Positions 1,068 through 55,208 of a DNA stretch of 64,000 nt are shown in pieces. The stretch comes from Octopus bimaculoides. Lineage: Eukaryota. The translations under genes and the position numbers were made by a program. Location: NCBI RefSeq assembly GCF_001194135.2, contig NC_068998.1, positions 10,196,227-10,260,226 of the forward strand. The letters run 5' to 3'. The notes under the pieces are model-generated. The model was not told the DNA's origin. It worked only from the letters and a program-made list of their open reading frames with translations, and did not search any database. Positions within the stretch are counted from its first letter, which is position 1; the number at the start of each line of letters is the position of its first letter.

Positions 1068-1074
1068 TCAACCA
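1068..1074 (-). CDS. Candidate terminal coding exon of the peptide precursor (completes Ile, then Gly, stop)
   Basis: aaatttcag|T GGT TGA. Phase-2 compatible with exon 2. Only 7 coding nt, so other acceptors in 1075-2318 cannot be excluded. Confidence 0.5.
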
Positions 1075-2741
1075 CTGAAATTTAATGATACACGAGAACA
1101 ATATTTAGATTTTTAATTTCTTTATTTTTTCAAAGAATTACATTTTTTCTAAAAGTGGAAGACCTTTCTTAACTAGTTTGTTCCAGGAGACTCGAAAAGA
1201 AAGAAAGTCATTATAGAGAAAGCATCTAATTGTTAATTAAAAATTTAAGGCTGGCAGGATGATTAGAAAACCAGGTGAAATACTTCGCCACATTTGCATC
1301 TCTCTTTGCTTTCTGAGTTCAAATTCCACCAAAGTTAACATTACTGTTCATTTTCCAAGGGACAATAAAATAAGTAGCAGTCGAGGACTAGGGGTTGATG
1401 CAATCAACTAGACCCCTCCCCTCAAATTTCAGGCCTTATGACTATAGTAGAAAGGATTATTAATTACTGTATTTGAACGGGTATAAGGAACCCATTTTTG
1501 TCAAAAATTAGGTTTAAAAAATATGAGAGTCTTTTATACATGGATAGCATTATAGATATTAATAAATTACTTAATTTCTCGAACCTCAAATCTCCAAATT
1601 AGGGGGTTCCATATCCACAAGGGTTCCTTATACAAGTTAAAAATGGTAAATATCTAAGGCAGTGAGCTGGCAAAAGTGTTGGCAATTTGGACAAATGCTT
1701 AGCAGTATTTCTTCCAACTTTACAGTATGAGTTCAAATCCTGTTGAGGTCAGCTTTGTCTTTCATCCTTTCATAGTCAATAAATTAAGAACCAGTTGAAC
1801 ACTGGGGCCTTGCAAGTACAGATTGGAGCCTGGAGCAGCTTCTTGGCTTGCCAGTCCTCCATCTAACCGCAGCCAGCATAGAAAGTAGATGTTAAACAAT
1901 GATGATGATGAGCTGGCAGAATTGTTAGCATGCTAGACAAAATGCTTAGCGATATTTTCATTTGTCTTTCATCTTTCTGAGTTCAAGTTCCACCAATATC
2001 AATTTTGCCTTTCATCCTTTCAAAGTCAATAAATCAAATACCAGTTGTCATAATTATCAAGTGGCGATTAAGACCAAGGAGAGATAATTATAAAACTCAA
2101 AAATTCTCTGAAGTAGGAACAAAACCTGCTTTATGAGTCAGATAATATAGATTTGTGTGGCTTGGTTGGAAGCCATAATCCAATAGCTTTAGTTGCATGG
2201 TTTGAACTTATGACTTAAATGGTTATTAATCCAGCAACTTCATCTCACAGCATCTACTTCTAAGACTGAAAATTCTCAGTCTCAGAAAGGAACAAAGAAA
2301 CGCAAAACACCAACTTACATTTTGCATGCTGATGAGCACAAAAATCTCCAGAAACCACCAACATTGTCTTCACAAGTTGCCACGCAACCACTGGATAAAT
2401 CTAGGTTCTGTAGACGAGCAATAATGTCATCAACTGAAAAATATCAAAAACATCAACAATGATAAAAAATAATAACAACAGTTCCCTTGTGGTTATTTAA
2501 AAATTTTAAAGACGGGTGAAAATGAATAAAAGATGTAAGGTGGCAAAGTGGGGGAATCATTAACATTTTGGTCAAATTTTGCATGGGAATCGTGTCTCAA
2601 AATAAAGTGGTCCTTTTGAAGAAGATATACATATAACTTGGAAAACTTACTTGAGAATCTCTTATCTATTTCATCATCAGAATACACACTGGCACTCAGT
2701 ACCAAAGGCACAAGAGCCAAGAAGAAAAGTACGATTTTCAT
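1068..2741 (-). CDS. Small secreted 4-Cys peptide precursor gene, 3 predicted coding exons (2741-2651, 2433-2319, 1074-1068), 70 aa: MKIVLFFLALVPLVLSASVYSDDEIDKRFSIDDIIARLQNLDLSSGCVATCEDNVGGFWRFLCSSACKIG*
   Basis: Assembled by hand. Acceptor ttttaccag ends at 2754, ATG at 2741, donor gtaagt at 2650 (phase 1). Acceptor atttttcag ends at 2434, 115-nt open exon, donor gtaagt at 2318 (phase 2). Candidate acceptor aaatttcag ends at 1075, giving ATT GGT TGA. Hydrophobic N-terminus, KR dibasic site, four Cys. Confidence 0.75.
1481..1633. mobile_element. MITE-like element with 13-bp perfect terminal inverted repeats
   Basis: gtataaggaaccc at 1481-1493 and gggttccttatac at 1621-1633. Lies in intron 2 of the peptide gene. 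Confidence 0.5.
2319..2433 (-). CDS. Peptide precursor coding exon 2 (Cys core)
   Basis: tttttcag|TT GAT GAC ... TGC AAA AT|gtaagt. Translates (I)DDIIARLQNLDLSSGCVATCEDNVGGFWRFLCSSACK. Phase matches exon 1. Confidence 0.85.
2651..2741 (-). CDS. Peptide precursor coding exon 1 (signal peptide, acidic spacer, KR)
   Basis: MKIVLFFLALVPLVLSASVYSDDEIDKRFS + 1 nt, flanked by a cag acceptor (exon starts 2753) and a gtaagt donor. Lies within track ORF 2493..2774. Confidence 0.85.
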
Positions 2742-3077
2742 GGTATTCAGTTTCTGGTAAAATAAAAATGACACATGGAATCTATGAGACAGGATTACAA
2801 GGAGAAGGAGTTGAGAAAATTACAACGAAGTATGTTTGGGAGGAATGTATTAAGACCCATGGGTCCAGATGGCTGCAGCACACACACACACACAACAACA
2901 ACAACAACACACACATGCACATTCATCCAAAGTGTATTCAAACATTGATATTTGTCAAGCAAATATGAAAGAGAGAACTCAATTCATGGTCTGGCTCTCC
3001 ATTGGTTATGACAATGAGAGTTCCAGTTGATTTAATCAATGGAACAGCCTGCTCATGAAATTATGTATGCATGTATG

Positions 3078-3121
<44 letters not shown>

Positions 3122-3329
3122 TGTATACATACATCTATATATATATATTTATATATATAAGCATTGATTAGAGAACAAGCATCAAATTCAGGCCAACACC
3201 TTTATACAAACCCATGCTTCTATACATTTCATCATATACAAATAATACCATGGCCTTCAACATATAAAAGAAATACATACATAAGCACCAAAATTAAAAA
3301 AAATATATATGCACATATAAAAATACAAA

Positions 3330-9800: not shown

Positions 9801-12800
9801 AATATAAGCATATAAGTGTCCAGGACTTTAACTATTCAACCTCTGGAAATAAAATATGCATTCAACACAGAGAAGTGGCGAAAAGATAAAATAATCAAAA
9901 TTGGTAAAAGAAAACAATGAACTTACTTGAGCAATCCTCGATCCAGTTTGTCGACAGCATCACATAAGATGTGTATGAAATGTTAAGAAAGAAAACATGA
10001 AATATATGAAAGGGATGGGTCATTTATCAAATATTTTTGTTGTTACTGTTTTTTAGCCCAGTTCAACTCTGATCAATCAATCATGATATTTGTTATTGTA
10101 AAAAATATTTTGTTTCATGGCCTAATCTAGAAGGCTCTGAATCTTTCTGACTTCATCACACACACAAGGCATCCTTATTGTTTAACCTATTAGCATCTAA
10201 ACTGGCCACATCCAGACAAAATGTTCTACTTGTTTTATGATGAACTGGCCATATCCAGCCTCTCACACCTACCCTACAATGTCATTCTAAAATTAAACAA
10301 TCACATCTTCAAAATCTTGAAACTACTAAATACTAAATGACCTTACTGTTTCTCCAAATTTCAGGCATCGTGACTATGTTATAAACTGTTGGTTATACAT
10401 GAGTGTAAATATATGAATATCACAATTTTCATGATACTCAAGCATTAGTATGAATTTTCCACTGCTTAAATTCATAGATCTAAGAATTTCGTGACACAAC
10501 TAGATAACTCTAGTTGTGCACCAAATGTGCCATGGAGCTCCATTTGAGAATCACTGGTTTAATCAACTTGAATTTAACAACATTAACAAAAGCTAAAAAC
10601 AAATTAGTTCTGGTCAAAAAGGATATGTTTATAACGTCCATGCTGGGAGTATGACATTGTCCATATTGAATCAAATAGAAAACAGAGACTGCCACTACGC
10701 AGAAACAATTCACGTGAATCTGGTGGGTCCAGCTGAATAAAGATAAAAGAAATGAATATATATGTATATATATATATATTTGACAGGAAGGACAACAAAA
10801 GAAAGAAAGAGACCTCGATATTATGCAAATAGAGGAATTTATCTGTAAAAATATGTGACACTTATTCAGTAGCCATGATAAAACTCAGAGTTTCGGATGC
10901 CGGGGTGGGAGACCACGCCAACATCTCTTCAGTTATCCGGCCAATTGAAAATTCCTGTGAAAAATGACCGTTAAAAACAAAGGGAAATTACTGTGTAGTG
11001 ACAAAATGCGTATATTATCGCATGCACGCATATATCCATATACGCACGCATATATTTACATACGCACACATCCACGCACACACTCCCAAGCACGCACATG
11101 TACCTTCCAAGCACTGTTGTAAACAGAGGAGGTGAGCTAGAATGTTAAAACTTAGTGTGCTTGCCTGGCAGAGTTCAAGGTCAATCTGTACCAAGCGGTT
11201 TTACACTGTGTGCATTAGATTTGTTACTATGGCAACAGTCCAGTTACTTATTGATCAGACCATGTATGTTTCAGCAAATACAGTACTTATGTGTTTCAAT
11301 GTTTTAATTACTTTTGAATATAATCAGCTAATTAGATAGCTTTAGTGAAATAATTAATATTTTTATGGAAATTATGATGGAAGGTTTTAACTTAAATATG
11401 AGCATGTTAAATGGGGGACAGTTTGGTACAGTAGAACTAGAAGTGGGTGGTATGAAAAGGGGAAAGCAGAAGGGAAAAACACAACTCGATAACATTTGGT
11501 TCAAAAGATAAGTAAATTATTTGAAGGCCCTGCATTATGACCGATAAAAATAAGGAAAACAATATCTCACCCNNNNNNNNNNNNNNNNNNNNNNNNNNNN
11601 NNNNNNNNNNNNNNNNNNNNNNNNNNNNNNNNNNNNNNNNNNNNNNNNCCATCCCCCCTCCCAAATCACAACCATTACTATAGCCACCACCTACGCTGCT
11701 GCTGCCACTGCCACCACCTCCACCACCACTGCTGCTGCCGCCGCCACCACCACTACCACGGGTGTATGGTAGTAGCTGTTGGTGGGTGGCAAAATTATTG
11801 AGTTGGATACAGAAGTGATAATGGTGGTTCTCATAGCAGTAGTAGCGGTGGTGGTAGTATGGGGGTGGTGGTGGTGGGTAAGACGGTCACTGCATAAAAG
11901 CACCTAGTATATTCTGTAAAGTGGTTGGTGTTAGGAAGGGCATCCAGCCATAGAAACCATTCTAAAACAGATATGGAGCCCAGGTAGTCCTCCAGCTGGC
12001 CAACTCCTGTCAGGTTGTCCAACCCATGCCAGCATGGAGAACAAACCTTACATGATGATGATGATGATTCCTTTTTACACTTTCATGTTTCTTAGCGGGG
12101 CTCGGAAAGGAGTCTCAGGGAGTAGCATCCCTGCCTTCCCCGAGCTAGTTTTCCACCACATTTCTTTACAATTGTGGTTGAGGCCTTTGGTCTTGGGACC
12201 ACTCATGTCTAGAAACTAAAGTTTGGGGGTAAGCAAAGGCATGCTCCCCATAGAAAATCCAGCTTTGAAAAAGCCTTGTGAGAATAGCAAAGGAGCATGG
12301 ACACCAGCCAGCCCAAAGGTTGGGGTAGGCTGCACCTGCTTACCTCAAAAAGGAAGGTGCAAACCCTCATCCTGGGTCACAAGCATGACTTGCCTTATGA
12401 TGGCCAACAGCCTGAGGAAATGCTTGGGGTGAGGTTGGAAAGTTGGAATATGGGTTGTAAGATTCCACAAAATTAGGATTGCTCAACTGAAGTAGGATGC
12501 AGGGGACATGCCTGTATGGAAGGATAACCACGATTGTAGTTAGCTTGGCATACCTTCTAGAGCACAGCAAACTGCCAGGAGTATTAGTCCTTTGTCCTCT
12601 CCTCTCTGAGGCCCAATATCAACATCCATTCTCACCACTTCATCCCATGCTTTCCTGAGTCTACCCCTTTCACATGTTCTCTCCATAATTAGAGATTGGC
12701 ATGTCTTGATGCAATTGTTCATATGTATAACACAACCATACCTGGGGTTGATTTCTTCAACTAAAAGGCAGTGCTCCAGCATGGCCACAGTCAAAATGAC

Positions 12801-15800
12801 TGAAACCAGTAAAGGTTTAAAAGCGTATACCAAAGAGAAATATATTTGTAAATAACACTATTCCCAATACTCCCATACTCATCCCCTCCCATCAGAATCA
12901 CCTGTAAAGGTAGCAAAGCAGAGAATATTACCTGTAAATCAGGCTGAGAGGTAACCCATCGACCAAACGACCCGAGGCAGGAGATCAAGTCGTATTTATG
13001 TGGTACTGGCCGAGAGAAATTTTCCTTTGTGAAGATGATATCATCTGTTTCTGTAAACATCCGTACTGTAAGTAGAGCAGAAAAAAAGGTGCATTTAAAC
13101 TTTTCGTTGTTGTTATTTACCATGAAGAGATCTCTGAAACAAAACTCCCTACAAAAATTAGACTTTATTCCATTTTGTTGATGTAAAAAAATTTCTGTTT
13201 TGCTTATTTTATGCTTAAAAAGTCCATGAGATGGATGCAGGTACAACTGTGTAGCTAAGAAGCTCCCTTTGCAGTCAAGTGGTTTCTAGTTTACTTTTAC
13301 TGCATGGCACCTTAGGCAAGTGTCTTCTACTATAGCCCTCGGGTTAACCAAATCCTTGTGAGTGAACATGATAGAGGGAAAATGTGTGAGTCCATCATAT
13401 ATGTATGTTTTTGTGTGCCCCAGCCATTACTTGACAAATGGTGCCATGTAGTGGGACTGAACCAGAAGCCACTTGACTGCAAAATAAGCTTCTTAACCAC
13501 ACACTTGTACCTGCGTCCATTTCATGTCCCTTTACACATAAAAGGAACAAAAGAAAAATATAGGACCTGGTGTGATTTTTTGAGATATTTTTTAGGGAAA
13601 AAATACATTTTAGATGCTATCAAATACGGTAAGACTAAATGCAGTTATTTACTGTAAAAGGAATTTACAGTTGAATCTAATATAGTCCCTAGAAGGAACA
13701 TTGATATAACTTTGTCCAGTAAACTTACCGCCATTGTCGATGATACAGTCAACTCCCAGACCCCCAGTCTCTTCCATCACACTGCTGCGTAACATACTCC
13801 CATGGCCACTCACATCGATTATTTGTGCTGAAAGGAGAGTAAATTATACACTGTTAAAAAAGAAGTTAGAGGATATCTTGAGCCAAGAGGCTAATTAAGC
13901 CAGAGCTTGTTCTAGGCTCCAAAGCATTTAAGTGAACGAAAGAATAAGACAACACCCTAAACAAGATGTCAGACTATTGCACGGTTAACTTTCCAGTTGC
14001 TACTGGTACATTTCCAGGTGACTGGACTGGACTGGAGCAACAAGAGATATATGTGTCCTTGCATATAGACACTGGCATAGCTGGAATCAGAGACTAACAA
14101 AACATCCAATTTTTGCTGTGTTGACCATTCAGCTTAGTTCCAGAAGATCAAGACAAATGACACTCTCGTCATCTCAAAGAACAGGTCACCTTATTCTGCT
14201 GTGCTGATTACTGGCTCTTGAACATTTTAAGTCATGGAATGGAAAAGCAGTGTGACACCATTCTGTGAACTCAGCCTTCCTTTTTAGAGCATAAAGATAT
14301 ATGTTTCATTGCCTGTCACCAGATTAAAATAAAATGTGTTTTCATCGGTTTCAAATGCTTCCAGCAGATCTGAGCAGACTTCCATACATTTTGCTTTCAA
14401 ATCAGCTGTCAATTACCAAAGTACCCAGTTTGCACAGGTTTTCTAATAACCAGTCTTTCACAATTTCCTGTAATGTCTTTTGACCATAGTCCAGTTATGC
14501 AGCAAGTTCACAAACTGCAACTTGTTTATCAAAGCATATCATTTCATCCACTTGTCAGCAATTGCAGCTGATGGCCTTACACTGTGTGGTTTATCTTCAA
14601 TGCTGGTTTCCTTTTCTTTGAACTTCCTCCATCTGTACACATTGCTCTTGTCAATGGTGTCATCTTTGTAAACAACCCACAGCGTGGCCATAGTTCAATA
14701 GAACATGTAAATAAAAGATAAAAGACAATAAAATTGATAAGAATATGTTTTTAGAAAGAATGGAGTACCAAAGTGGAATAAGATTAACCATTATTTACCT
14801 AATGAAGGGATTGAAGACTTTAAAAAATGTCGTTCTTCTGCAGAAGCCACAGTTGTAATAACCTAGAGAGATTTATAATATATATTAAAATATATTTTCT
14901 AAAATTCATGAAAAATAATAGGATGTGTGATGCTTCCCACTGTCACTACTCTAAAGTTTATATTTCCCCACTGCAATTAATATTACAATTCAAAAGGTAT
15001 TTTTTTTATTGGAATTTTAGCAAGATTTAGTGCTAAAGACACACTGTGGAAAAAATAGATGTATGGAATATGAAAATCCGGGCTCAAGGGGAGGTAATTC
15101 AGTGAGTATTATTCTTAAACATATACATACATGTTTATGTAGTATATACACACATACATGCATATATATTTATTTATTTATATAACCATCATCATCATTC
15201 GTCGGCATTTCACATCCACTTTTACATGCTAGCATGGACTGATAGGTTAACTGGTTAACTATCAGATTAATAATAATAATAATAATAATAATAACAACAA
15301 CAATAACGATAATAATAATAATAGTTTCAAAATTTGGCACAGGGCCAGCAATTACATTGATTCCAGTACTTATTTAATCGACCCTGAAAGGATGAAAGGA
15401 AAAGTTGACCTCAGTGAAATTTGAACTCAGATCATGAAAATGGATGAAATAATGCTAAGCATTTTGCCCGTCATGCTAACAATTCTGCCAGCTCACAGCT
15501 TTATAATAATAATAATAATGGTTTAAAATTTTGCCACAAAGGCAGTCATTTTGGGGGAGGGAATGAGAAGATTACATCGTTTATTTTGGCATAATGACCC
15601 AAAGTACCACAAAAAAAAGGCATTTAATTATTTATTTCACTGAAACTAAAAATGAATTGTCTATACCTTTGCCCCCCAACTCAGGGCTAGCTGAATGGTA
15701 ATACTGCCGAAAGTCGAGGCTCCATCCATTACAAGTATTGTGTCTCCAGCACAGAGTCGACAGAGGTAGTGAAGTGCAGTGTAAGCATGTAAGCAGTCAC

Positions 15801-16063
15801 CGATGCCACAAGCAGCATCTTCAAAACTCAGCATCTCAGGTTTCTTTACTATTAAGAAAGAAAGAAAGAAAAAAAGAATGTGAGAAATGATAATAGAATA
15901 AGATGTCATTAAAAAATATAAGATTATAAAATATCTGACGCATTTGAACAGAGTACAAATGGTATAGTGTGTGTGTGTATAGATATATACACATATATAT
16001 ACATATGCATATGTGTGGTATGTGAATATGTATATATATGTATGAGTATATATGTATGTGTGT

Positions 16064-17521: not shown

Positions 17522-20517
17522 AAAAGAGTACTAGTTGAGTACCAGGTGTCCTCTACTATAGTTTGAGGTGACCAATGTCTTGTGAGCGAATTTGATAGAT
17601 GAAAACTGTGTGGAAACCTGAAGTACATATATGTGTGTATTTTTGTGTTTGTGTTTGTCCCACCACCATTAATTGACAACTGTTGTTGGTTTGTTTATGT
17701 CCCTGTATCTTAGTGGTTCAGCAAAAGAGACTGATAGAACAAGTAGATTTGACGAAAATCCTTCGAGGTGGTGCTCCAGCACAGCTGCAGTCCAATGACT
17801 GAAACAAGTAAAAGATAAAAGCTGAAAGATAACCCCTGACTCCCACCCTCCNNNNNNNNNNNNNNNNNNNNNNNNNNNNNNNNNNNNNNNNNNNNNNNNN
17901 NNNNNNNNNNNNNNNNNNNNNNNNNNNNNNNNNNNNNNNNNNNNNNNNNNNNNNNNNNNNNNNNNNNNNNNNNNNNNNNNNNNNNNNNNNNNNNNNNNNN
18001 NNNNNNNNNNNNNNNNNNNNNNNNNNNNNCAACAATAACAAAATAGATACCTTCTGGTTGATGGGACTCAGAGCTGAGGTTTTGACCTTCACTTGAACTT
18101 CATTTTTGCCAGGAGATGGAACTGGCAGCTGAAGATGAAGAAAATATAAAACACATGAATTTTGTTTATGAAACACTAATTATTTTTTATTATTATTTTT
18201 TATTGCCCACAAGGGGCTAAACATAGAGGGGACAAACAAGGACAGACAAATGGGTTAAGTCGATTACATCGACCCCAGTGTGTAACTGGTACTTAATTTA
18301 TCGACCCCGAAAGGATGAAAGGCAAAGTCCACCCGGAACCATGTGGTTAGTAAGCAAGCTACTTACCACACAGCCACTCCTGCACCCATATACACATATA
18401 TAAAAGATAGGTGCAGGTGAGATTACAAGAGGCACAGGTGTGGATGTGTGGTTAAGAAGATTGTTTCTCGACCATGTGATCTCAGATTCAGTCCAACTGT
18501 GTAGTATCTTGGAGAAATGTCTTCTACCATAGGCCTTGGTAGAGTAAAGCTTTGTGAGTGGATCTGGGAGACAGAAACTGAAAGACGGCGAGCTGGCAGA
18601 AACGTTAGCACGCCAGGCGAAATGCTTAGCGGTATTTCGTCTACCGTTACATTCTGAGTGCGGGATGCATAACCATTTTGTTCAAAACAATATAGTGAAT
18701 ACATAAAAAATAAAGACAACCAACATATTTATTTACCAAAGAGTTATCAAAGAAGGCGACGTTTAGCAATAAGATAGTTATACCACACTTAGTATGCACA
18801 TATCCGAATCTCACAAACTAAGCATCAAAAAAGGTAAGTGAGATTTGTGTAACTGGTGTTTAGCTTTGAAGATATCATTAATATTTGCTTAGGAATTGCT
18901 GCATCCAACCAAGAGAATTGCTTTCAAATGTTCATCAGTCGACCTTGTTCAATGTGCTGACTTCACATCCTTCATTATTGAAGATGTTTGAGCACAGACA
19001 TAAGTTGTTCTAAACACTGTTGCCATACCAAATGCAAACGAACAATCATTGCTGGAACTTACACAAAAGATACAGGGCGGCGGCGGGCCTGATGAACTGC
19101 CCTTGCGGGCCGGAGTCTGGTGACCCGTGCTTTAGAGGAAAAAGGTTGTAAACTAGAAGGCTTTGCTTTCCAGTTTATTTGATATCACAAAAGCTCATTT
19201 TCTTTGAGGAAACGTGACACCGTACCAGTGATTACAATTAATTCACTTTGTTGCAGGTGCAAAACAACAACAACAACAACAAAGTTATGGCTTTCATAGG
19301 AGTAAGGTCAGGATAACGGAAAAACAAGTCAAAAAGTGTTGTGAAGACAAGTTATTGTCACAGAGAAAATCCTGAGTGTTGTTGTGAATGTTGGTAGAGG
19401 CTATTTTCAGATAGTGTGAATTCGTCAACGCCCCTTTTGTTTTGCATTAAGCACGGCTCTGCGTTTTCGAAGTTGTATTTATTTAGCAAGTAGTTTAAAT
19501 TAGAAATCATATGTTGAAACTGAAATAAGTACGTCGTGGAAACATTACAACAACCTTTTAAAACACACATCAACCGTTATATTAAAATACTATACAAGGT
19601 GTTAGTAGTATTTCGTCGTACATCTACGTTCTCGACACTAACGGATGTCAGTGGCTAATGAGTCTTCCTCACAAATTGCAGTATGGTTATGTATTATACT
19701 TCTTACGTAAAAGAATGATACACGATTGGGAAATCATACACATTACAAATACATTCTAAAGGTGTTCTGAAGAATTTCAGTGAATATGCGGAAATAAAGC
19801 GATGCAGTGCAATAAATAAATGTGCGGGAGGGAGAAGAAAAGAAACAGAATTATGTTAAATTCTTTTGTCTGAGCATCAAACTATACAACTGGCATGAAC
19901 GGGTTCATTGATCCAGCCAGTATGCTACGGGTATTTACTGTATTGAACTAATAATAGAAGGTGGAGGTGGTTAATAGTAACAGTACAGCTTCGGAACAGG
20001 GCTTAGAATATTTGCTTTCGTGTTTTTAAGTGTCATGTTCAAGCCGTACGGTATTGTCTCGGCCTTTAGCCCCGATGCAGTCGAGAAATTAGTACCAGTG
20101 GCATGCCGTGACCGATTCAATCGATCATGTGGTACCACTTACAAAAAGAAAAAAAGGCGATCTTTCGAGATCGCCGATATGTTTAAATAAAAAGAAAAGA
20201 ATACACAGTGTTTGTGAATGTGTGTGTGTGTATATGTATATATATAATCCTCCTCTAGTTATAAGTAAATTCACAAGCTATTGTATGGGCAATCTATTAT
20301 AAATCAATCAATACCACAACTGTTGCCATGTTTTAAATATTAACAGGAAGATGGAAAACTCGATCACTTTGACACAAGAAATAAACACTTATAATAACAA
20401 TAATTAAAATGATAACAATATCAGATCGTAATATAAACAACTCACATCGGTCTCAAGAACATATTTTGATGTTTCTTCGTCTGAATTAACAACAGATTGC
20501 CAAAACACGGCTTTCAT
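6414..20517 (-). CDS. CRYZL1: CRYZL1 / quinone oxidoreductase-like protein 1 (zeta-crystallin-like, MDR superfamily; FERRY Fy-4), 11 coding exons, 1074 nt, 357 aa
   Basis: All 11 exons join in frame with matching phases (72+78+127+69+182+64+99+134+106+46+97 nt). Motifs match human CRYZL1 as recalled: AYTALHYL, VMDGASTFGSITIQLA, EETGGLGVD, PHKYDLISCLG, LDPPDS..LFL, terminal VQF*. Confidence 0.95.
6560..6960 (-). mobile_element. SINE family B (internal TA/GT microsatellite)
   Basis: Reverse complement of the family seen at 23313-23712 and 47161-47740. Confidence 0.8.
9380..9790 (+). mobile_element. SINE family B copy
   Basis: gtggtaagaagtttg...ggaaactgaaagaagccc...gactgaaacaagtaaa, the same architecture as 23313-23712. 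Confidence 0.8.
9927..9972 (-). CDS. CRYZL1: CRYZL1 exon 10: (H)ILCDAVDKLDRGLL(K)
   Basis: Follows the AC acceptor, 46 nt, gtaagt donor. Aligns with human CILKDVMEKLSTGVFR as recalled. Confidence 0.9.
9973..10626 (-). other. U12-type (minor spliceosome) AT-AC intron, CRYZL1 intron 9, 654 nt
   Basis: 5' end ATATCCTTTTT at 10626 matches the U12 consensus RTATCCTTT. Branch-like TTTCTTAAC at 9990-9982, AC at 9974-9973. The junction restores the frame (C+AC = His) into ILCDAVDKLDRGLL. Confidence 0.92.
10183..10340. mobile_element. Degenerate piggyBac-type MITE inside the U12 intron
   Basis: ttaacctattagcatctaaactggcc...accctacaatgtc is the reverse complement of the 58985-59205 family. Another decayed copy lies at about 8187-8392. 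Confidence 0.6.
10627..10732 (-). CDS. CRYZL1: CRYZL1 exon 9: LDPPDSRELFLRSGSLCFLFDSIWTMSYSQHGRYK(H)
   Basis: tttattcag acceptor, 106 nt, followed by the non-GT donor ATATCCTTT. Confidence 0.93.
12600..12745 (-). mobile_element. Short RTE LINE 3' ORF fragment
   Basis: Track ORF 12540..12833 contains IKTCQSLIMERTCERGRLRKAWDEVVRMD, homologous to VKKCRSLTVEGACGRGRSRKTWDKVV at about 5000. Confidence 0.6.
12932..13065 (-). CDS. CRYZL1: CRYZL1 exon 8: (V)RMFTETDDIIFTKENFSRPVPHKYDLISCLGSFGRWVTSQPDLQ
   Basis: cttacag acceptor, 134 nt, gtaata donor. Lies within track ORF 12791..13246. Confidence 0.93.
13729..13827 (-). CDS. CRYZL1: CRYZL1 exon 7: (A)QIIDVSGHGSMLRSSVMEETGGLGVDCIIDNG(V)
   Basis: cctttcag acceptor, 99 nt, gtaagt donor, EETGGLGVD motif. 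Confidence 0.95.
14130..14700 (-). mobile_element. Mariner transposase remnant in CRYZL1 intron 6
   Basis: Minus strand reads LWVVYKDDTIDKSNVYRWRKFKEKETSIEDKPHSVRPS, then LVTGNETY (cf. IVTGDETW) and F*DDESVICLDLLE (cf. FWD..GVI..DFL). Frameshifted. Confidence 0.8.
14799..14862 (-). CDS. CRYZL1: CRYZL1 exon 6: VITTVASAEERHFLKSSIPSL(A)
   Basis: ctctctag acceptor, 64 nt, gtaaat donor, phase 0/1. Confidence 0.9.
15667..15848 (-). CDS. CRYZL1: CRYZL1 exon 5: (V)KKPEMLSFEDAACGIGDCLHAYTALHYLCRLCAGDTILVMDGASTFGSITIQLALSWGAK
   Basis: cttaatag acceptor, 182 nt, gtatag donor. Contains the start of the Rossmann fold. Forms the C-terminal part of track ORF 15661..16344. Confidence 0.95.
16309..16377 (-). 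CDS. CRYZL1: CRYZL1 exon 4: (G)VVPLSSINSGCAEYCIFHEYDI(V)
   Basis: ttatttccag acceptor, 69 nt, gtaagt donor, phase 1/1. Confidence 0.92.
16805..17188 (-). mobile_element. Full-length SINE family A in CRYZL1 intron 3
   Basis: tRNA-like head (gtggaggtgcaatggcccagtggttagggcagcgg...ttcgattccc) through to the (CAA)n tail. Confidence 0.9.
17299..17425 (-). CDS. CRYZL1: CRYZL1 exon 3: VLDEVFRKNPDQKHYAVGRDVAGVITQVGEGVLTFKEGDVVV(G)
   Basis: gatag acceptor, 127 nt, gtaagt donor. Carries the MDR-type G.D.AG.(V/I)..VG..V..FK.GD.V motif. Not in the ORF track. Confidence 0.93.
18051..18128 (-). CDS. CRYZL1: CRYZL1 exon 2: LPVPSPGKNEVQVKVKTSALSPINQK
   Basis: cttcag acceptor, 78 nt, gtatct donor, phase 0/0. 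Confidence 0.92.
18880..19129 (-). mobile_element. Internally deleted hAT transposon remnant
   Basis: Minus strand begins cacgggtcaccagactccggcccgc (hAT-like terminus), followed by MATVFRTTYVCAQTSSIMKDVKSAH*TRSTDEHLKAIL, matching the hAT C-terminal dimerisation motif FGSTY.CEQ.FS.MK..KS..RSRLTDEHL. Confidence 0.75.
20446..20517 (-). CDS. CRYZL1: CRYZL1 coding exon 1: MKAVFWQSVVNSDEETSKYVLETD
   Basis: ATG at 20517 (aagATGa context), 72 nt, donor gtgagt at 20445. Resembles the human N-terminus MKGLYFQQSSTDEE. Confidence 0.9.
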
Positions 20518-26700: not shown

Positions 26701-28431
26701 GTGTGGTTTGTAGGGGATTTGGCTGTTATTTCTAACTATTAGAGCGGCTACATAGAATCTCCATCATTGGTTCGTGAAGTCCACAAATTGTTACGAGCGG
26801 AGATACAACCGAAATAAGTCGTCTTCCAGTGCATCAACTTGGTCAACACACACACACACACAGACAGACAGACAGGCACTACCACAAATTATGTCAGAAT
26901 GAAGAACCCTTTACAAATTCGCTCGTTTTTTTTTTTAGAAATAGTAACGAGATTTCGTTCGCATCACACCTCACCGGCTTCTAAGAAAGAAAGGACTTGC
27001 TGCGTAAAGTCTTCCGGGATGCATTATGTGTGTTTGGTGTGTGTGAGTGAGGAAACTTGATATTAACAACTGGAGTTACATAAATCTACCAAACCAGCTG
27101 ATATTGGGTTAAAGCAACATCAGTAAAGGCGGAAAATGTGTAGGCTAGTGAAACGGGAAGTTAAGATTTTAATGCATTTTCAGACAACTTTTGCAGTAAA
27201 GTATTTCTAAGTGAAATGCCTTTATAACGGTAATCGAAACCAGATGACATTTTTACTGCGCTTTTGCTATCGTATGGTAGATAGTAAATCTGTATGATGG
27301 TAGAAATGGTTTTCCGGTTATAGAAAGCTTTGTGAGCGTTGATTCTGTAATCTATATTGATTTCCCGCGCATTTCATACACTTACATAATTTCGGGGTGG
27401 GGGGTTGCTCAGATCAGCTGTGAGTTTTCTTTTTAATAATAATAATAATAATCTTTTCTACTATAGTGACACAAGATCTGAAATTTTTTGCAGTAGAGGT
27501 CTAGTCAATTATTACTTCGACCACAGTTCTCAAATGGTACTTATTTTATCGACGCCGAAAAAATGAAAGGCAGTCAACCTCAGCGGAATTTGAACTTAGA
27601 ATGCCGCTAAGCATTTTATTCGGCGTGCCAGCACTTCTGCCTGTTCGCCACTCTATAGCTGATAATGATGATCTTTCTTGCTATAGGCAGAAGTCCTGAA
27701 AATTGGGGGAGGAGGAGGGGGCTAGACGATTACATCGATCCCTGTGCTCAGCTGATACTTATTTTATCGATCTCGACTGGATGAAATGCTAAATCGACTT
27801 AAGCGGGTTTGAACCAAGAATGTAGTAGATGCTGCATGTCATTTTGTCCGATACTACAATAGGATTTTGGTGATATANNNNNNNNNNNNNNNNNNNNNNN
27901 NNNNNNNNNNNNNNNNNNNNNNNNNNNNNNNNNNNNNNNNNNNNNNNNNNNNNNNNNNNNNNNNNNNNNNNNNNNNNNNNNNNNNNNNNNNNNNNNNNNN
28001 NNNNNNNNNNNNNNNNNNNNNNNNNNNNNNNNNNNNNNNNNNNNNNNNNNNNNNNNNNNNNNNNNNNNNNNNNNNNNNNNNNNNNNNNNNNNNNNNNNNN
28101 NNNNNNNNNNNNNNNNNNNNNNNNNNNNNNNNNNNNNNNNNNNNNNNNNNNNNNNNNNNNNNNNNNNNNNNNNNNNNNNNNNNNNNNNNNNNNNNNNNNN
28201 NNNNNNNNNNNNNNNNNNNNNNNNNNNNNNNNNNNNNNNNNNNNNNNNNNNNNNNNNNNNNNNNNNNNNNNNNNNNNNNNNNNNNNNNNNNNNNNNNNNN
28301 NNNNNNNNNNNNNNNNNNNNNNNNNNNNNNNNNNNNNNNNNNNNNNNNNNNNNNNNNNNNNNNNNNNNNNNNNNNNNNNNNNNNNNNNNNNNNNNNNNNN
28401 NNNNNNNNNNNNNNNNNNNNNNNNNNNNNNN

Positions 28432-29527: not shown

Positions 29528-30276
29528 TATTCAAATTGGACGATTATACCCAGATATGTAATTCAAATAATTATATACAAAGGAGAACTGACATACATAA
29601 TGTGTATTNNNNNNNNNNNNNNNNNNNNNNNNNNNNNNNNNNNNNNNNNNNNNNNNNNNNNNNNNNNNNNNNNNNNNNNNNNNNNNNNNNNNNNNNNNNN
29701 NNNNNNNNNNNNNNNNNNNNNNNNNNNNNNNNNNNNNNNNNNNNNNNNNNNNNNNNNNNNNNNNNNNNNNNNNNNNNNNNNNNNNNNNNNNNNNNNNNNN
29801 NNNNNNNNNNNNNNNNNNNNNNNNNNNNNNNNNNNNNNNNNNNNNNNNNNNNNNNNNNNNNNNNNNNNNNNNNNNNNNNNNNNNNNNNNNNNNNNNNNNN
29901 NNNNNNNNNNNNNNNNNNNNNNNNNNNNNNNNNNNNNNNNNNNNNNNNNNNNNNNNNNNNNNNNNNNNNNNNNNNNNNNNNNNNNNNNNNNNNNNNNNNN
30001 NNNNNNNNNNNNNNNNNNNNNNNNNNNNNNNNNNNNNNNNNNNNNNNNNNNNNNNNNNNNNNNNNNNNNNNNNNNNNNNNNNNNNNNNNNNNNNNNNNNN
30101 NNNNNNNNNNNNNNNNNNNNNNNNNNNNNNNNNNNNNNNNNNNNNNNNNNNNNNNNNNNNNNNNNNNNNNNNNNNNNNNNNNNNNNNNNNNNNNNNNNNN
30201 NNNNNNNNNNNNNNNNNNNNNNNNNNNNNNNNNNNNNNNNNNNNNNNNNNNNNNNNNNNNNNNNNNNNNNNNNNAT

Positions 30277-33400: not shown

Positions 33401-34959
33401 CCTCCAGTACAAATTATGAAAAGCACCAGTCAAGTAGTGGGGGTACTTTAATCCACTACTTCTTCCCCCTAACTCATGGCCTTGTTTCTATGTTAGAAAT
33501 CCCTAAACCCACTAAGGTCAATTTTGCCTTTCAGTCCAAAAGAAAGTACTTCTTCTGTTACCAGGCTTTCACACACTTTTTGTCTACTGTATTTCATTTA
33601 CAAGGCTTTAGCTGATCCAAGGTTATGGTAGAAGAGACTTGCTTAAGGTGTCACATGTTGGGAGGGAACTCCAGATCATGTAATTGTGAAATGAATTTCT
33701 TAATAATACAACCATGCTTGCACCCTTATGCCAGTAAGGCCTTCAGGAAAGACATGAACATCACGGCATATCTTTTATCTTTTATTTGTTTCTGTCAGTT
33801 GACTGAGGCCATGCTGTGGCATGAGTTTATAAAGGGTTTGGTCAAACAAACTGACCTCAGTACTTATTTTGAAGTTTGGTACTTATTATGTTAGTCTCAT
33901 TTGCTGAACTGCTAAGTTGTAAGGATGTTACCTAACTAATACCAGTTGTCAAGCAGTGGTGGTGGACCAAGATACACACACACACATGACGGGCTTCCAC
34001 ACAGTTTCCATCTACCATATTCACTCACAAGACATTGGTCGATCTAGGGCCATAGCAAAAGACATTTGCTCAAGGATCCGTACAGTGGGACTGAACCTGA
34101 AAGCACACGACTGCAAAGTAAGTTCTTCTCAACCACACAGCCATGCCTGTGTTTAGGAGATAAATCTTTGATAAATGAAGCCTGCAATGCAAAAAGCTGC
34201 AGCTATCTCACTTTCTCCGCTAAAGCTCCTGGGAAAGGCATGAATAATACAGCTTCTGCTTCTCATGCCTTGTTTTTCCTTCTTCACTTCTGGTTTCACT
34301 CCTCCTGCCTGTTGTGATATAAATATGAGACTTCTTATCTATATGAAGATTATTATTATGAACTTGTAGAACAAACAGGAAATCCTTTGTTTCAAGTTTC
34401 GTACTTCTGCTCCTAATATCCAGTCATATGTTGCAACCATCCCAGTAGGTGGTCCAGATTTCTAATATTTGGTCAACTACAACTCCTAACACAAAGCTGT
34501 CATCACCTGCTAGAAATAACAGTGAATTTCTCTCAAACCACATCATATTGTTTCCGAAGATGAAAAGACATGTTAGGTAGTGAATGTTTATTTCACGTTT
34601 TTCCTTTATCAGAACTAATGATTTCTGGTGTGATCATGTGGATGGCTGCAAGAGCATTCCATTAAAAAGGCTCAAAAAGACCAAAATGCTTCTGGTGTTC
34701 TCACTGGCCACTGTTGGAATGAATTTTCATGTCACTTTGATACTTGTGTTTTTAACACAGCATGTCCTTAGGTCTGCCAATGGTGTATAAACATTGAATA
34801 TGATATTGTCATATATGCCATCTAATATAGTATATGAAATATTCTAAGAGAGAAGTTTATAATATTTCAATTTTAACTTTGATAAGCTAAATATTTAGGT
34901 TTGTTATGGTTATATTATGTTACTGCAAACAGGGTACAAAATATGTTTGAATTCTAACA

Positions 34960-35680
34960 TTCACGCACTCTCTCATATAAACATACACACACTCTCACAT
35001 ACATATACACACACTCTTATACATATACACACACTCATATATAACGTACCCTCTCAAATAACGTACTCCTTCTCATATATACACTCTCTCTCACATACAC
35101 ATATACACTCTCACATAAGCATATACACACTCTCTTTCTCTCTCACATACACATATACACACTCTCACGTGCACATATACACACCCTCTAACACACATAT
35201 ATACACACCCTCTCGCATACACATATACACACCCTCTTGCACACATACACACCCTCTCATGCACACCCTCTCTCATGCACATACTCTCTTATATACACAT
35301 ACACACCCTCTCATATACACACCTCTCACACATATACACCTCTCACATACACATATACATACCCTCTCATATACACCCTCTCACACATACACACACCCTC
35401 TCACATACACATATACACTCCCTCTCACATACACATATACACTCCCTCTCACATACACATATACACACTCCCTCTCACATACACATATACACTCCCTGTC
35501 ACATACATATACACACCCTGTCACATATACACACCCTCTCACATATACACACCCTCTCACATGCACACCCTCTCTCACACACACACACACACACACCCTG
35601 TCACATGCACATGTACACATCTCTCACACATATACACACCCTCTCATATGCTCACACAGTCTCACATACACAGACCGTTT
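34960..35680. repeat. Low-complexity CA/CT-rich minisatellite-like tract
   Basis: Repeated acaccctctcacatacacatatac-type units. Gives spurious His/Thr-rich ORFs in all frames. Confidence 0.9.
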
Positions 35681-36087
35681 CACTTACAATCCATTGTAAT
35701 ATGAGTGTTTTCTATATATTTCTTTTTTTTTTTTTTTTTAATCACCAAAATTATATACATTAACTTAGTGACTTAAATTTTAATGCAAATGGTATTTGGA
35801 TATTTGGCAAGCAGTATTTGCAGTTTGAGTCACATCGCATGAGTGGGTCTGTATTTCTTTTTCTGCCTCAAAATTTTAAATTTCTTTCATGATTTAGCTT
35901 GAAGACAAAGAGGAGCTCCTGGGACTCTTTTCATGTTGCCCCCAAAGACCAACGAGCAGGAGGGTGGCTGGAGAAGGTATTCCCAAACTAGGGACCTGGT
36001 CTGAATGTTAGGAACTGATCGGTCTCTGCTAACGGTACCCAAGGACCGAGTAGTGGTGTTAATAAGCAGGGTGGGAGGTGGGTGGCG

Positions 36088-52035: not shown

Positions 52036-52279
52036 CACACATGCGAAGTCTGCTATTCTAATGGGATTGATTTTGTTGCTCAGCAGTTATGCAATTCCCA
52101 CTGCAAAGAATGCTGTCACTTTGGGGTCATTTTAAAGTACTGTTACCCACTTTACTCAGCCAAAATGGACATCAGACTGTATATACGGTTGTGATTTGAG
52201 CTTACTGTCTTTGCTGTTTTCCTCCACATTTCCTTCTACCCCCACCATCTCCCCCCTTCTCTCTCTATTCTAATTTATG

Positions 52280-53075
52280 TCTGTTATTCACTCTTATTTC
52301 TGCATTCATTCATTCATGCACTCACTCACTCACTCGCTCTGTCTCTCAATCGTCATTCAAAATATATTCTCTTCTCACACTTTGTTTCTCAGCGAGCATG
52401 TTTCTCTGTCTGTCGGTCTGTTTGTTTCTCCACTCTCACTCCGACTCTCTCAAATCTCCCTCTGGCTCTCTCTTCTCTCTCTCTCTCTCTCTTTCTCTCC
52501 TCCTCTCTCTCACACACATGCAGTAAAAATCTCTCACCCATACACGCCTTCTCACACAAACACTCACTCAACATCACTGTCACTACACACACTTCCCTTC
52601 ATCTCATGCAATTTCTTTTTTGCTCATACTCTCATTATCTCTATCACCCCCACCTCACTCATGCTCTCTATACTCACTCATTCTCTCTCTCTCTCTCATT
52701 CTTTCTATCCCAAATGTGCACTCACTTTATCTCTTACACACACACACACTCTCTCTCTCAACCACACTCATTCTCTTTCTCTGATTCTCTTACACACCCC
52801 CATTGTCCTTTCACCTACACATACTTATTTTCCTTATACATTTTCTCTCATTCTCTCTCACACACATTCTCTTGCAAACACACACTCTCTCTCATTTTCT
52901 TTTGCATACACTTTCTCTCTCATTCACTCTTGCATATTCACTCTGCAACACAGTCACTTTAACATTCTTTCTCTGTCTCTCATTTTCCCTGTCATTCACA
53001 ATCACACACACAAGCACTCGCACATCTCTGTATCATGCCTACTTTCGCTTCACTCTGAATTCAAGTTAACACACA
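52280..53075. repeat. CT/CA-rich low-complexity tract
   Basis: Degenerate (CT)n/(CA)n; source of spurious Ser/Leu/His ORFs. Confidence 0.85.
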
Positions 53076-55208
53076 TGTAATGATGTGATTTCAAGAAAGG
53101 TATTGATTTAAAAATTAAAAACTTTAATTATGGGCAGTTTTCGGTATCTTGGTAATGTGAACTAGGAATGATCCCAGTCAAACTGACATTGAAAGGGTTA
53201 AAGTCATTTAAAGCAAAACAAAAAAGGAAAAAAAAAAGATCTGATTAAAAAAGTTCAGAGTAGTCTCCCTTGAACATCAGCTATGATGTCACATTCTACT
53301 TTTTGTCAGAATTTATGAGAAGTATTATAATGAATGTTAAAATGTTCTTTATGTGCAATGAACATTGAGTTAACCCTTTAAATTCCTTAAAGCAAGATGA
53401 GATAGTTTTTCTTATATTTTTTAGAATAAAATTTTTTAAAATTCCAGTAATTACACAACATCATAGGAAATATTATAATTTCCTGCTGTTGCTGTTGCTG
53501 GCTTGTGGGTGGGTGGGTGTTTGGTTGTTGGAGTAACAGAATCAATAGGATGATAGATGAAGTTCAATACTTTCTAAGTTAAGATCAGCATATATAAATG
53601 GTGTGAACTATCTGAAACACTGCCTTCTGGGCAGTTTTATGATTGCTTGCTTGACATGTATTATCTCTGTCCCTCTCTCTTTCTCTTTCACATTCACACA
53701 CTGTCCAATGTGTCCTTTCCTAATGTTGGCTGCTTGAATGTAATTTTGAGGAAATTTGGATGCTATTTGTAACAGGCTAGGTTACAGTGTTTTGTGAAAG
53801 GTAGTGGTGGGAGGGGCTGGTAATGCTTTGGCTACATTATACATAAAAGGTGTCAAAATTGTAATGATATTTGTTCGGTAACTGATGAGGGGTTGAGGAT
53901 TTTTGTGTCCATTGCTTGTATTTTTTCCTGTTTGTTTGTTTTTGTATTTTCCTATGTTGATCCCCTCTACTACATTTTTATTATATATATAAGCTTGCTT
54001 CCCAACCCCATGGATCTGAGTTCACTCCCACTGTGTGGCACCTTGGGCAAGTGTCTTCTACTATAGCCTTGAGTTGAACAAAGCCTTGTGAGTGGATTTG
54101 GTAAACGGACACTGAAAGAAGCCCATTGTGTGTGTGTGTGTGTGTGTGTGTCTTTGGGTTTGTGTTTGTCCCCCCCATCACCGCTTTGACAACTGGTGTT
54201 GCTGAGTTTATGTCTCCATAGCTTAGCATTCCATAAAGAAGTGCTGATCACTCAAACTGGTTGGAACTCATAGAAGAGGGAGACCCAGAAAGACCTAGGA
54301 TGAAGTACTGAAGGATGACCTTAGGACACTGAGCCTTTGGGAAGCGATAACAAATGACCAAGATATATGGCATCTTGCTGTACTCAAGAAAACCTGTCCT
54401 CTACAACAGATGGTGTTAAGGCCACTCTCCTTGATGAAGAAGATTGGCCTGAAGTTCTATGTCAGTGCCACATAAAAACCACTTGTGCCATGCCACATAA
54501 AAACCACTTGTGCCGTGCCATGTAAAAAGCACTCGTGCTGGCACCAGTGCCATGTTAAAAGCACCCAGCATACACTGTAAAGTAGGTGATGTTAGGAAGG
54601 GCATCCACTTCTAGAAACCAAGCCAAATCAAACTGGAGCCTGGTGCAGCTCTGGCTGCCAGCTCTGGTCAAACTGTCCAACCCATGCAGTGTAGAAAATG
54701 GATGTTAAAAGATGATGGTACACATACACACACACACTACAAATGTGTGTGTGTGTGTGTGTGTGTAATGATAGCAGTATGCAAGGATGCTGCATTTTAG
54801 CTCTGTAAAATGAAATATAACTTCATTCCAATATAAATTGTCTTTTTTGATGACATTTCATTAGAAGCTTTAAATCGAAATTGTACAACATTTCTAATTG
54901 AAATTCTAATCACAATAATGGTTAATGCCATTTTGTATTCTATTGTTTTTTAATAACCTATTTCAAAATTCTGATTGTAAAAAATATTTTAAGCACCATT
55001 TTAATGGATTATTTTCAAAGTAAATGATAATATAAATTTGAGTTGGTTATTGTGAAATGATATTTATTATGGAAGTTATTTGTTGAAATTACAATAAAAC
55101 AATAATGATATTTCCTATCCTTTTCCCTATTCATTTGTTGGTATTTCTGCTACTGCAATGCCTAGTTCTTTGTTTTTATTTTATTTTGCTACGAGCTATG
55201 CTATAACT

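Follow-up and report, generated by a model that had tools for sequence, protein, structure and literature searches.

A spliced gene for a predicted secreted four-cysteine peptide in Octopus bimaculoides and its relatives in an apparently ancient, unnamed molluscan family

Among animal peptides, the cystine-stabilised helical hairpin has, to our knowledge, been described almost exclusively in toxins. Here, a gene whose product has a comparable predicted architecture is described from a 64,000-nucleotide stretch of the Octopus bimaculoides genome (contig NC_068998.1, positions 10,196,227 to 10,260,226 of the forward strand). This whole stretch is referred to as the window, and the gene lies on its minus strand, near its first letters. 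According to a 2014 review on conotoxins, the vil14a group represents framework XIV, with I-IV/II-III pairing of the cysteines and the cystine-stabilised alpha/alpha (CS-alpha/alpha) fold, and its precursors were then unknown. The same pairing is established in scorpion kappa-KTx as in the vil14a group. In a 2024 paper, which cites PDB entry 6EFE for vil14a, the likeness between CS-alpha/alpha peptides from cone snails, scorpions, worms, anemones and plants is attributed to convergence.

Like Conus vil14a and flf14, scorpion kappa-KTx and the plant alpha-hairpinins, the octopus product is small, apparently secreted and carries its C-x3-C pairs on predicted helices. In contrast to these hairpins, it is longer (47 residues) and, in the predictions, has an additional helix at the N-terminus as well as a helical tail. 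It is also anionic, would be released from a pro-peptide by cleavage at a dibasic site, and its conservation extends to non-venomous bivalves. A second set of likenesses points to the classical neuropeptide and hormone precursors, which have the same order of signal peptide, acidic spacer, dibasic site and C-terminal bioactive peptide; in oysters, the mature part is moreover better conserved than the signal and spacer. Unlike those precursors, the family lacks a conserved amidation signal, evolves fast in Octopus and encodes one long disulfide-bridged peptide instead of short repeated ones. Aplysia attractin and its relatives resemble the family too, as small, acidic, helical, disulfide-stabilised water-borne pheromones that evolve fast around fixed cysteines, but attractin has six cysteines against four in the octopus family. 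The general sequence searches gave no similarity to attractin. The observed gene structure, homology, conserved processing site and cysteine framework are best explained overall, at a probability of roughly 0.55, by a functional gene of three coding exons whose product would be a convertase-processed secreted ligand.

It is highly probable that the window holds a real secreted prepropeptide gene of the four-cysteine family. Translation would start from an ATG at 2741. Coding exon 1 (2741 to 2651, 91 nucleotides) covers the signal peptide, the acidic spacer VYSDDEID, the dibasic Lys27-Arg28 (2663-2658), Phe-Ser and the first base of Ile31, and ends at the phase-1 donor CAA/GTAAGT (the slash marks the splice junction). 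Over residues 1-30, it is 97% identical in tblastn to the O. bimaculoides relative P0001, with one of 30 residues differing. Intron 1 (2650 to 2434) measures 217 nucleotides; in the O. vulgaris genes P0023 and P0002, it is also of phase 1 and measures 2665 nucleotides in one gene and 1753 in the other. Coding exon 2 (2433 to 2319, 115 nucleotides) follows the acceptor ttttcag and encodes (I)DDIIARLQNLDLSSGCVATCEDNVGGFWRFLCSSACK plus two bases of Ile69, which is most of the mature peptide. The cysteine codons are found at 2386-2384, 2374-2372, 2338-2336 and 2326-2324, and the exon closes at the phase-2 donor AT/GTAAGT. The join of these two exons is exactly that proposed in the initial annotation of this locus; once joined, they give MKIVLFFLALVPLVLSASVYSDDEIDKRFSIDDIIARLQNLDLSSGCVATCEDNVGGFWRFLCSSACK, with the spacing C-x3-C-x11-C-x3-C. 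As that annotation had pointed out, the list of open reading frames misses the gene by reading through the first donor, which results in a 93-residue frame at 2493-2774.

Intron 2 (2318 to 1191; 1128 nucleotides, phase 2) compares with 1363 and 4653 nucleotides in the two O. vulgaris genes. Large indels, probably repeats, separate the otherwise colinear window and O. vulgaris introns. Three diverged copies of a short interspersed repeat lie in it at 1314-1383, 1728-1797 and 1978-2047; they share 63-77% identity and start with TGAGTTCAA(A/G)T(T/C)CC. Many similar pieces occur dispersed in other parts of the window and in the O. vulgaris loci L001, L002 and L006, and the repeat is probably an octopus short interspersed element.

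The initial annotation was right in proposing three exons, and the last of them had to be moved. Coding exon 3 (1190 to 1169) has 22 nucleotides: the acceptor ttcttttcgag is followed by T CTC CTG GAA CAA ACT AGT TAA, which completes Ile69, adds LLEQTS and stops with the TAA at 1171-1169. Only one of the 95 AG dinucleotides 3' of exon 2, the one at 1190, gives an orthologue-like phase-2 continuation (I-LLEQTS-stop), matching the orthologue ends I[VIL]LEQTG. Every base of the exon also aligns with the terminal exon annotated for both P0023 and P0002. The 3' untranslated region (1168 to a putative, approximate end near 1100, with the polyadenylation signal AATAAA at 1126-1121) belongs to a block, AATAAA included, that is conserved in both O. 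vulgaris genes. The spliced precursor therefore has 75 residues and ends in ...CKILLEQTS; all four splice sites are canonical and the frame is intact.

The earlier model had instead placed the acceptor at 1074, where the acceptor-like tttcag at 1080-1075 indeed gives an in-frame I-G-stop; it predicted a precursor ending in ...CKIG and, from it, a C-terminally amidated peptide of 41 residues. This acceptor sits beyond the conserved AATAAA and has no conserved counterpart in O. vulgaris, which has cttgag/TAGTG there, while the orthologue-supported acceptor is the one at 1190 and the product terminates in Ser. That model is accordingly held to be extremely improbable. The last sense codon is AGT (Ser) in the window gene and GGT (Gly) in O. 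vulgaris, so that the window protein has a terminal Ser in place of the Gly of its nearest relatives. Since the true exon 3 ends in Ser, the argument for amidation does not apply to the window gene. Nor is amidation a trait of the family, because the C-terminal tails are heterogeneous (LEQTG, LEQTS, LGKPN, LVGN, IFQQ, SSLNGK and HLVR) and hold no conserved Gly that could serve as amide donor.

At the 5' end, the stretch from 2753 to 2742, which runs from an acceptor-like site (ttttattttaccag/AAACTGAATACC) to the ATG, is conserved in both O. vulgaris paralogues and probably marks the start of the ATG-bearing exon in the 5' untranslated region. Acceptor-like sites lie 2-12 nucleotides 5' of the ATG in a cDNA contig and in the oyster and octopus genes, and a non-coding first exon upstream is for this reason probable. 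In the oyster Magallana gigas, the site just 5' of the ATG comes with an annotated upstream exon; Crassostrea virginica has an acceptor-like site as well. The cDNA in question is an RNA contig from run SRR25158133 (Logan). It encodes the 76-residue paralogue P0019 in a single uninterrupted frame, has AATAAA and a poly(A) tail 3' of this frame and shows the acceptor-like site just before its ATG. No paper on this run was found in the literature search. Transcription and splicing of the window gene itself thus have indirect support from its relatives, and the independent annotations of two Octopus species agree on the same three coding exons. A tblastn search with 11 family members found no second copy of the family in the window. 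The whole gene is bracketed by an inverted repeat of 72 nucleotides, 81% complementary, at 234-305 and 2992-3063.

The predicted signal peptide runs from Met1 to about Ser18, with the hydrophobic core IVLFFLALVPLVL and a mean Kyte-Doolittle hydropathy of 3.2 over residues 3-15. A signal of about 17 residues had been proposed before; the signal itself is borne out, and a cut after Ser18 or Ser16 is likelier than one after Ala17 by the -3/-1 rule, applied by eye. After the acidic spacer VYSDDEID and Lys-Arg, joined exons 1 and 2 read FSIDDIIARLQNLDLSSGCVATCEDNVGGFWRFLCSSACK. The mature peptide after Lys-Arg would have 47 residues (FSIDD...LLEQTS), with a calculated mass of about 5136.8 Da (average) or 5133.43 Da (monoisotopic) with two disulfides. 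The layout of the secreted precursor, with signal peptide, acidic spacer, conserved dibasic site and four-cysteine peptide, agrees with the earlier proposal.

The family extends beyond the octopus genus. A search of the spliced model against a database of 5.8 billion proteins returned three octopus proteins (E values of 5e-29, 2e-26 and 2e-18) over 99% of the query; they have 74-75 residues and end in ...CKIVLEQTG, ...CKIILEQTG and ...CQVILGKPN, none of them in ...CKIG. The exact window protein is missing from that collection. An exhaustive HMMER search with an octopus profile against 1.84 billion representatives recovered 12 true relatives, along with four spurious repeat proteins. Argonauta hians, M. 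gigas and Solemya velum were among the sources of these relatives. A wider profile improved the bivalve matches to E 3e-16 and added C. virginica and C. angulata; in a profile search, the Argonauta, oyster and Solemya members were recovered at E 1e-28 to 7e-13. The homologues comprise CAI9736016 (P0002) and the neighbouring 75-residue P0023 in O. vulgaris; A0A0L8FGZ6, A0A0L8GWF1, A0A0L8GVS8, A0A0L8GWF6 and LOC106874479 in O. bimaculoides; GAB1605707 in A. hians; XP_034302104, K1PUB8 and A0A8W8L1V4 in M. gigas; LOC111127373 in C. virginica; and KAL5021136 in S. velum. Their protein identities are 38-83%. All are labelled uncharacterised or hypothetical, except for one oyster entry with the automatic name 'Conotoxin', a name that Pfam does not support.

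The homologues have in common with the window protein the signal peptide, the acidic spacer, the dibasic site (KR, KK or RR in every member) and the spacing C-x3-C-x11(12)-C-x3-C, where x12 occurs in Solemya alone. Orthologues that keep the four cysteines, on which the initial annotation had made its proposal depend, are thus present: C47, C51, C63, C67 and Ala66, the Ala before the last cysteine, are invariant in 16-17 sequences. Nearly invariant are the initial Met-Lys, Pro12, the dibasic site and a Phe two residues before the third cysteine. Exon structure was compared in the window, O. vulgaris P0002 and P0023, M. gigas and C. virginica. All have a phase-1 intron a few codons past the dibasic site (two residues past it in octopus, four in the two oysters), a phase-2 intron and a short terminal exon. 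The phase-2 intron sits in the second codon after the last cysteine, which in the oysters is an Ile codon after Cys-Asn. As the intron positions and phases, the cysteine spacing and the processing site are all shared, common descent is much likelier than convergence, and a common descent of octopus and oyster genes would mean that the family predates the split of bivalves and cephalopods. The earlier framing as a cephalopod peptide was consequently too narrow, given that oysters and Solemya carry the family and that two oyster genes share its intron positions and phases. The oyster genes have different neighbours: a homeodomain gene lies upstream in M. gigas, and in C. virginica its place is taken by a trypsin-like gene. 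The short flanks compared gave no sign of conserved synteny between the oyster homologues and the octopus cluster.

As the initial annotation supposed, no named family was matched in the Pfam, PDB sequence and paper searches. Pfam gave nothing above threshold for the window model and nine relatives; the best score among the relatives was PF02950 Conotoxin (O-superfamily precursor) at 13.1 bits (E 0.19, cut-off 25.1), a match that covers no more of P0006 than its signal and pro region. The family profile and the hairpin peptide had no meaningful match at E<=10 among PDB chains of at least 20 residues, and no conopeptide was found there. Conotoxins were likewise absent from the HMMER matches in the 1.84 billion proteins. 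A full-text literature search retrieved no paper that mentions the octopus or oyster members by accession, gene symbol or peptide string. The mussel CRP-I family was considered and rejected, as its members are six-cysteine knottins. Judged from these searches, the family appears to be ancient, molluscan and unnamed in the databases and papers searched, with homologues already deposited there without annotation. Several deposited entries are truncated. Throughout the family, the phase-2 donor of intron 2 (xx/GTAAGT) always makes an in-frame TAA when the intron is retained, which yields a product one residue beyond exon 2; in the window, this occurs at 2319-2316 and would give ...CKM-stop. The truncated entries P0005, P0008, P0009 and P0030-P0032 are such read-throughs of intron 2, ending in ...CKM, ...CQL, ...CDV or ...CNM before the stop.

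The window is colinear with two loci on the O. vulgaris chromosome OX597831.1. Against the P0023 locus, flanks, introns and exons share 78-88% nucleotide identity from 3600 to 775, followed by a weaker block of 70% at 639-335. P0023 is, on this colinearity, taken as the orthologue of the window gene. P0002 was rejected for this place, because its colinearity with the window covers less of the locus and is of lower identity than that of P0023; it lies about 30 kb downstream of P0023 on the same strand and is a tandem paralogue. Two more O. vulgaris copies occur on the opposite strand within the next 47 kb or so, and one of them is unannotated. This copy (OX597831.1, about 42.0237 Mb; 12062-12923 of locus L006) resembles O. 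bimaculoides LOC106874479 and lies inside an annotated intron of CAI9736015, a 'gene' that spans 34 kb and whose N-terminal 33 residues probably stem from an upstream exon joined to it in error. On another chromosome, O. vulgaris has a further member, and in O. bimaculoides there are at least seven. The remaining cluster would lie beyond window coordinate 1.

The two main exons of the octopus genes may have different histories. In exon 1, paralogues of the same species differ at 4 of 91 positions and orthologues at 8-9 of 91 (the window against L001 and L002, positions 10001-10091); in exon 2, by contrast, orthologues group together. Such a pattern suggests that gene conversion or concerted evolution has acted only on the exon for the signal and pro region. 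In the comparison of M. gigas with C. virginica, synonymous sites are saturated (proportion of synonymous differences, pS, 0.70, and 0.76 for the mature peptide), and the proportion of non-synonymous differences (pN) is 0.047 in the mature peptide against 0.187 in the signal and spacer. Purifying selection in the oysters is thus strong and centred on the mature peptide. The oyster gene is conserved and single-copy-like, in contrast to the fast-diverging tandem array of Octopus.

The ratio of non-synonymous to synonymous rates (dN/dS) between the window gene and its orthologue is 1.11 (17.5 non-synonymous and 4.5 synonymous changes) and 0.95 in the mature part; it cannot be told from neutrality (Fisher p = 1). 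For octopus paralogue pairs, the ratio is 1.7-1.9, and the octopus counts comprise only 15-24 substitutions in three sequences. The window copy could on these figures be a recent duplicate that drifts neutrally, without a function of its own, in an otherwise functional family. The loss of the terminal Gly of its relatives and the absence of its exact protein from the 5.8-billion-protein collection would fit such a case. Its frame is intact, nonetheless, its splice sites are canonical, and it has kept Lys-Arg, the four cysteines, Trp/Phe and Ala66. The 3' untranslated region and poly(A) signal are conserved, and O. vulgaris has retained the orthologous copy at the same place. Indeed, reading frame, splice sites, processing site and scaffold residues are intact in every octopus copy. 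Neutral drift is therefore regarded as improbable, although less so than the amidated 41-residue product.

AlphaFold2 was applied to exon 2 alone (alignment of 16 sequences) and to the full O. vulgaris orthologue. The first model has helices at 2-9, 16-23 and 26-35, with a mean predicted local distance difference test score (pLDDT) of 73. The second consists of a signal helix, a disordered pro-region (pLDDT <50) and helices at 31-39, 47-55 and 61-74 at pLDDT 74-80, the last of which extends through the exon 3 tail. Cys47 and Cys51 fall in one predicted helix and Cys63 and Cys67 in the next. The models thus show, at moderate confidence, the two antiparallel helices with one C-x3-C each that characterise CS-alpha/alpha peptides. 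The initial annotation had called for a structure prediction of the C1-C4/C2-C3 pairing. A helix-turn-helix with C-x3-C on consecutive helices is indeed predicted; the pairing itself would follow by analogy, since two C-x3-C motifs on consecutive helices are expected to join I-IV and II-III. The N-terminal helix proposed earlier (IDDIIARLQNL) proved strongly amphipathic. It can be said with moderate confidence that the product is a disulfide-stapled helical peptide cut at Lys-Arg. By its modelled architecture, it would be a CS-alpha/alpha hairpin, but no demonstrable member of a named toxin family: the PDB and HMMER searches found no similarity in primary structure to the vil14a/flf14 group. 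The loop lengths may equal those of vil14a and flf14a, as was proposed in the initial annotation.

This architecture raises the question of venom. The cysteine framework and the predicted helix-turn-helix match the structural class of the hairpin toxins, the genes are tandemly duplicated in O. vulgaris, and dN/dS values of at least 1 around fixed cysteines occur in many toxin families. The peptide could hence be made in the salivary glands and act on ion channels of prey as a cystine-stabilised helical hairpin toxin, like the vil14a group or kappa-KTx. A 2026 preprint reports 27 cephalopod salivary-gland superfamilies of short secreted proteins whose function is unknown, and the four-cysteine family could be among them. 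Several observations argue against a toxin, however. The family is present in Solemya and, strongly conserved and with the same gene structure, in non-venomous oysters; the peptides are anionic; the PDB searches gave no sequence similarity to any solved toxin; and the PF02950 match is below threshold and limited to the signal and pro region of one paralogue. A venom role is for these reasons considered unlikely.

Charge also bears on a possible role in immunity. The window peptide has a net charge of -3 and an isoelectric point (pI) of 4.2. The mature peptides of the cephalopods and oysters have net charges of -1 to -5, pI values of 4.0-5.6 and a positive grand average of hydropathy. Anionic members make up 13 of 15, and the two Solemya members alone are mildly cationic. 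The window peptide therefore lacks the net positive charge that, with an amphipathic surface, defines cationic antimicrobial and alpha-hairpinin-like defence peptides. If the peptide were an effector of innate immunity or an antimicrobial, it would be the animal equivalent of the plant alpha-hairpinins, with which it shares the predicted two-disulfide helical-hairpin scaffold. Tandem copies and quick divergence in Octopus would suit such a role, and molluscs hold many expanded secreted cysteine-rich defence families, e.g., mussel CRP-I. The negative charge of all cephalopod and oyster members speaks against it, as does a mature peptide that is near-invariant between two oyster genera, unlike hypervariable defence peptides. 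Such an effector appears slightly less probable still than a venom peptide. The antimicrobial and potassium-channel-toxin ideas of the initial annotation are thus both weakened by the anionic peptides, the strong conservation in oysters and the lack of a matching PDB chain.

An extracellular ligand with a specific protein partner accounts better for these data. It is favoured because of the deep conservation and strong constraint in non-venomous oysters, the convertase layout and the acidic charge, and we give it, on sequence grounds, about an even chance; a pore-blocking toxin or a membrane-active antimicrobial is less likely. The signal peptide would route the precursor into the secretory pathway, where an enzyme of the furin or prohormone-convertase type would cut after Lys-Arg and remove the short acidic spacer. 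A 47-residue, anionic and fairly hydrophobic peptide would then be released and would fold into an amphipathic N-terminal helix followed by a helix-turn-helix, with C1-C4 and C2-C3 pairs. It would most likely act outside the cell as ligand of its protein partner, as a hormone, a neuropeptide or a pheromone-like signal. On the fixed cysteine scaffold, the octopus tandem copies diverge quickly.

Some findings weigh against such a ligand. The octopus dN/dS values given above, both between orthologues and between paralogues, are less in line with a classical neuropeptide than with peptides of an effector type or with relaxed constraint. In the accessible part of the supplementary text of two oyster neuropeptide surveys, the oyster homologue does not appear. 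Foldseek searches of the PDB with both AlphaFold2 models found no analogue, only one meaningless match at E 5.8, which is no surprise for helical models of this size, and confidence in the structure is no more than moderate. Owing to the tandem expansion, the high dN/dS and the lack of the oyster homologue in those parts of the surveys, venom and immune roles keep some probability for the octopus copies.

Elsewhere in the window, exon-like frames on the minus strand at 15661-15840 and about 18030-18176 read ...KPEMLSFEDAACGIGDCLHAYTALHYL...GASTFGSITIQLALSWGAKV and ...LPVPSPGKNEVQVKVKTSALSPINQK. They look like parts of a gene of the medium-chain dehydrogenase/quinone-oxidoreductase type; these short frames had no Pfam match, and a database search gave only unnamed fragments at 57-75% identity. 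Six runs of N (11573-11648, 17852-18029, 27878-28431, 29609-30274, 61512-62099 and 63071-63545) are gaps of a scaffold assembly, mostly flanked by (TA)n or (TATG)n microsatellites. Abundant tracts of (TG)n, (TA)n or (CA/TA)-rich sequence occur at 800-880, 2870-2925, 3046-3167, 34917-35763 and 52277-53080. Such low-complexity tracts yield long spurious open reading frames rich in His, Thr, Tyr and Ile.

Genes that encode small secreted peptides in tiny exons often escape annotation or go without a name. The present family gives several lessons for annotation, with one member absent from the protein collection, at least one O. vulgaris copy buried in a neighbour's intron and several entries truncated by read-through. 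In a wider and rather speculative view, which we hold about as unlikely as a venom role, the family may represent an orphan pan-molluscan hormone or neuropeptide system built on a cystine-stabilised helical hairpin since at least the ancestor of bivalves and cephalopods. It could then have been the stock from which molluscan venom hairpins such as the unassigned vil14a group arose, and the octopus expansion could be a step towards exocrine use, in saliva or chemical communication. The strong conservation in oysters suggests a specific molecular partner, and the family is a concrete candidate for the de-orphanisation of molluscan receptors. The octopus expansion, in turn, offers a test case for the diversification of an endogenous peptide scaffold after duplication.

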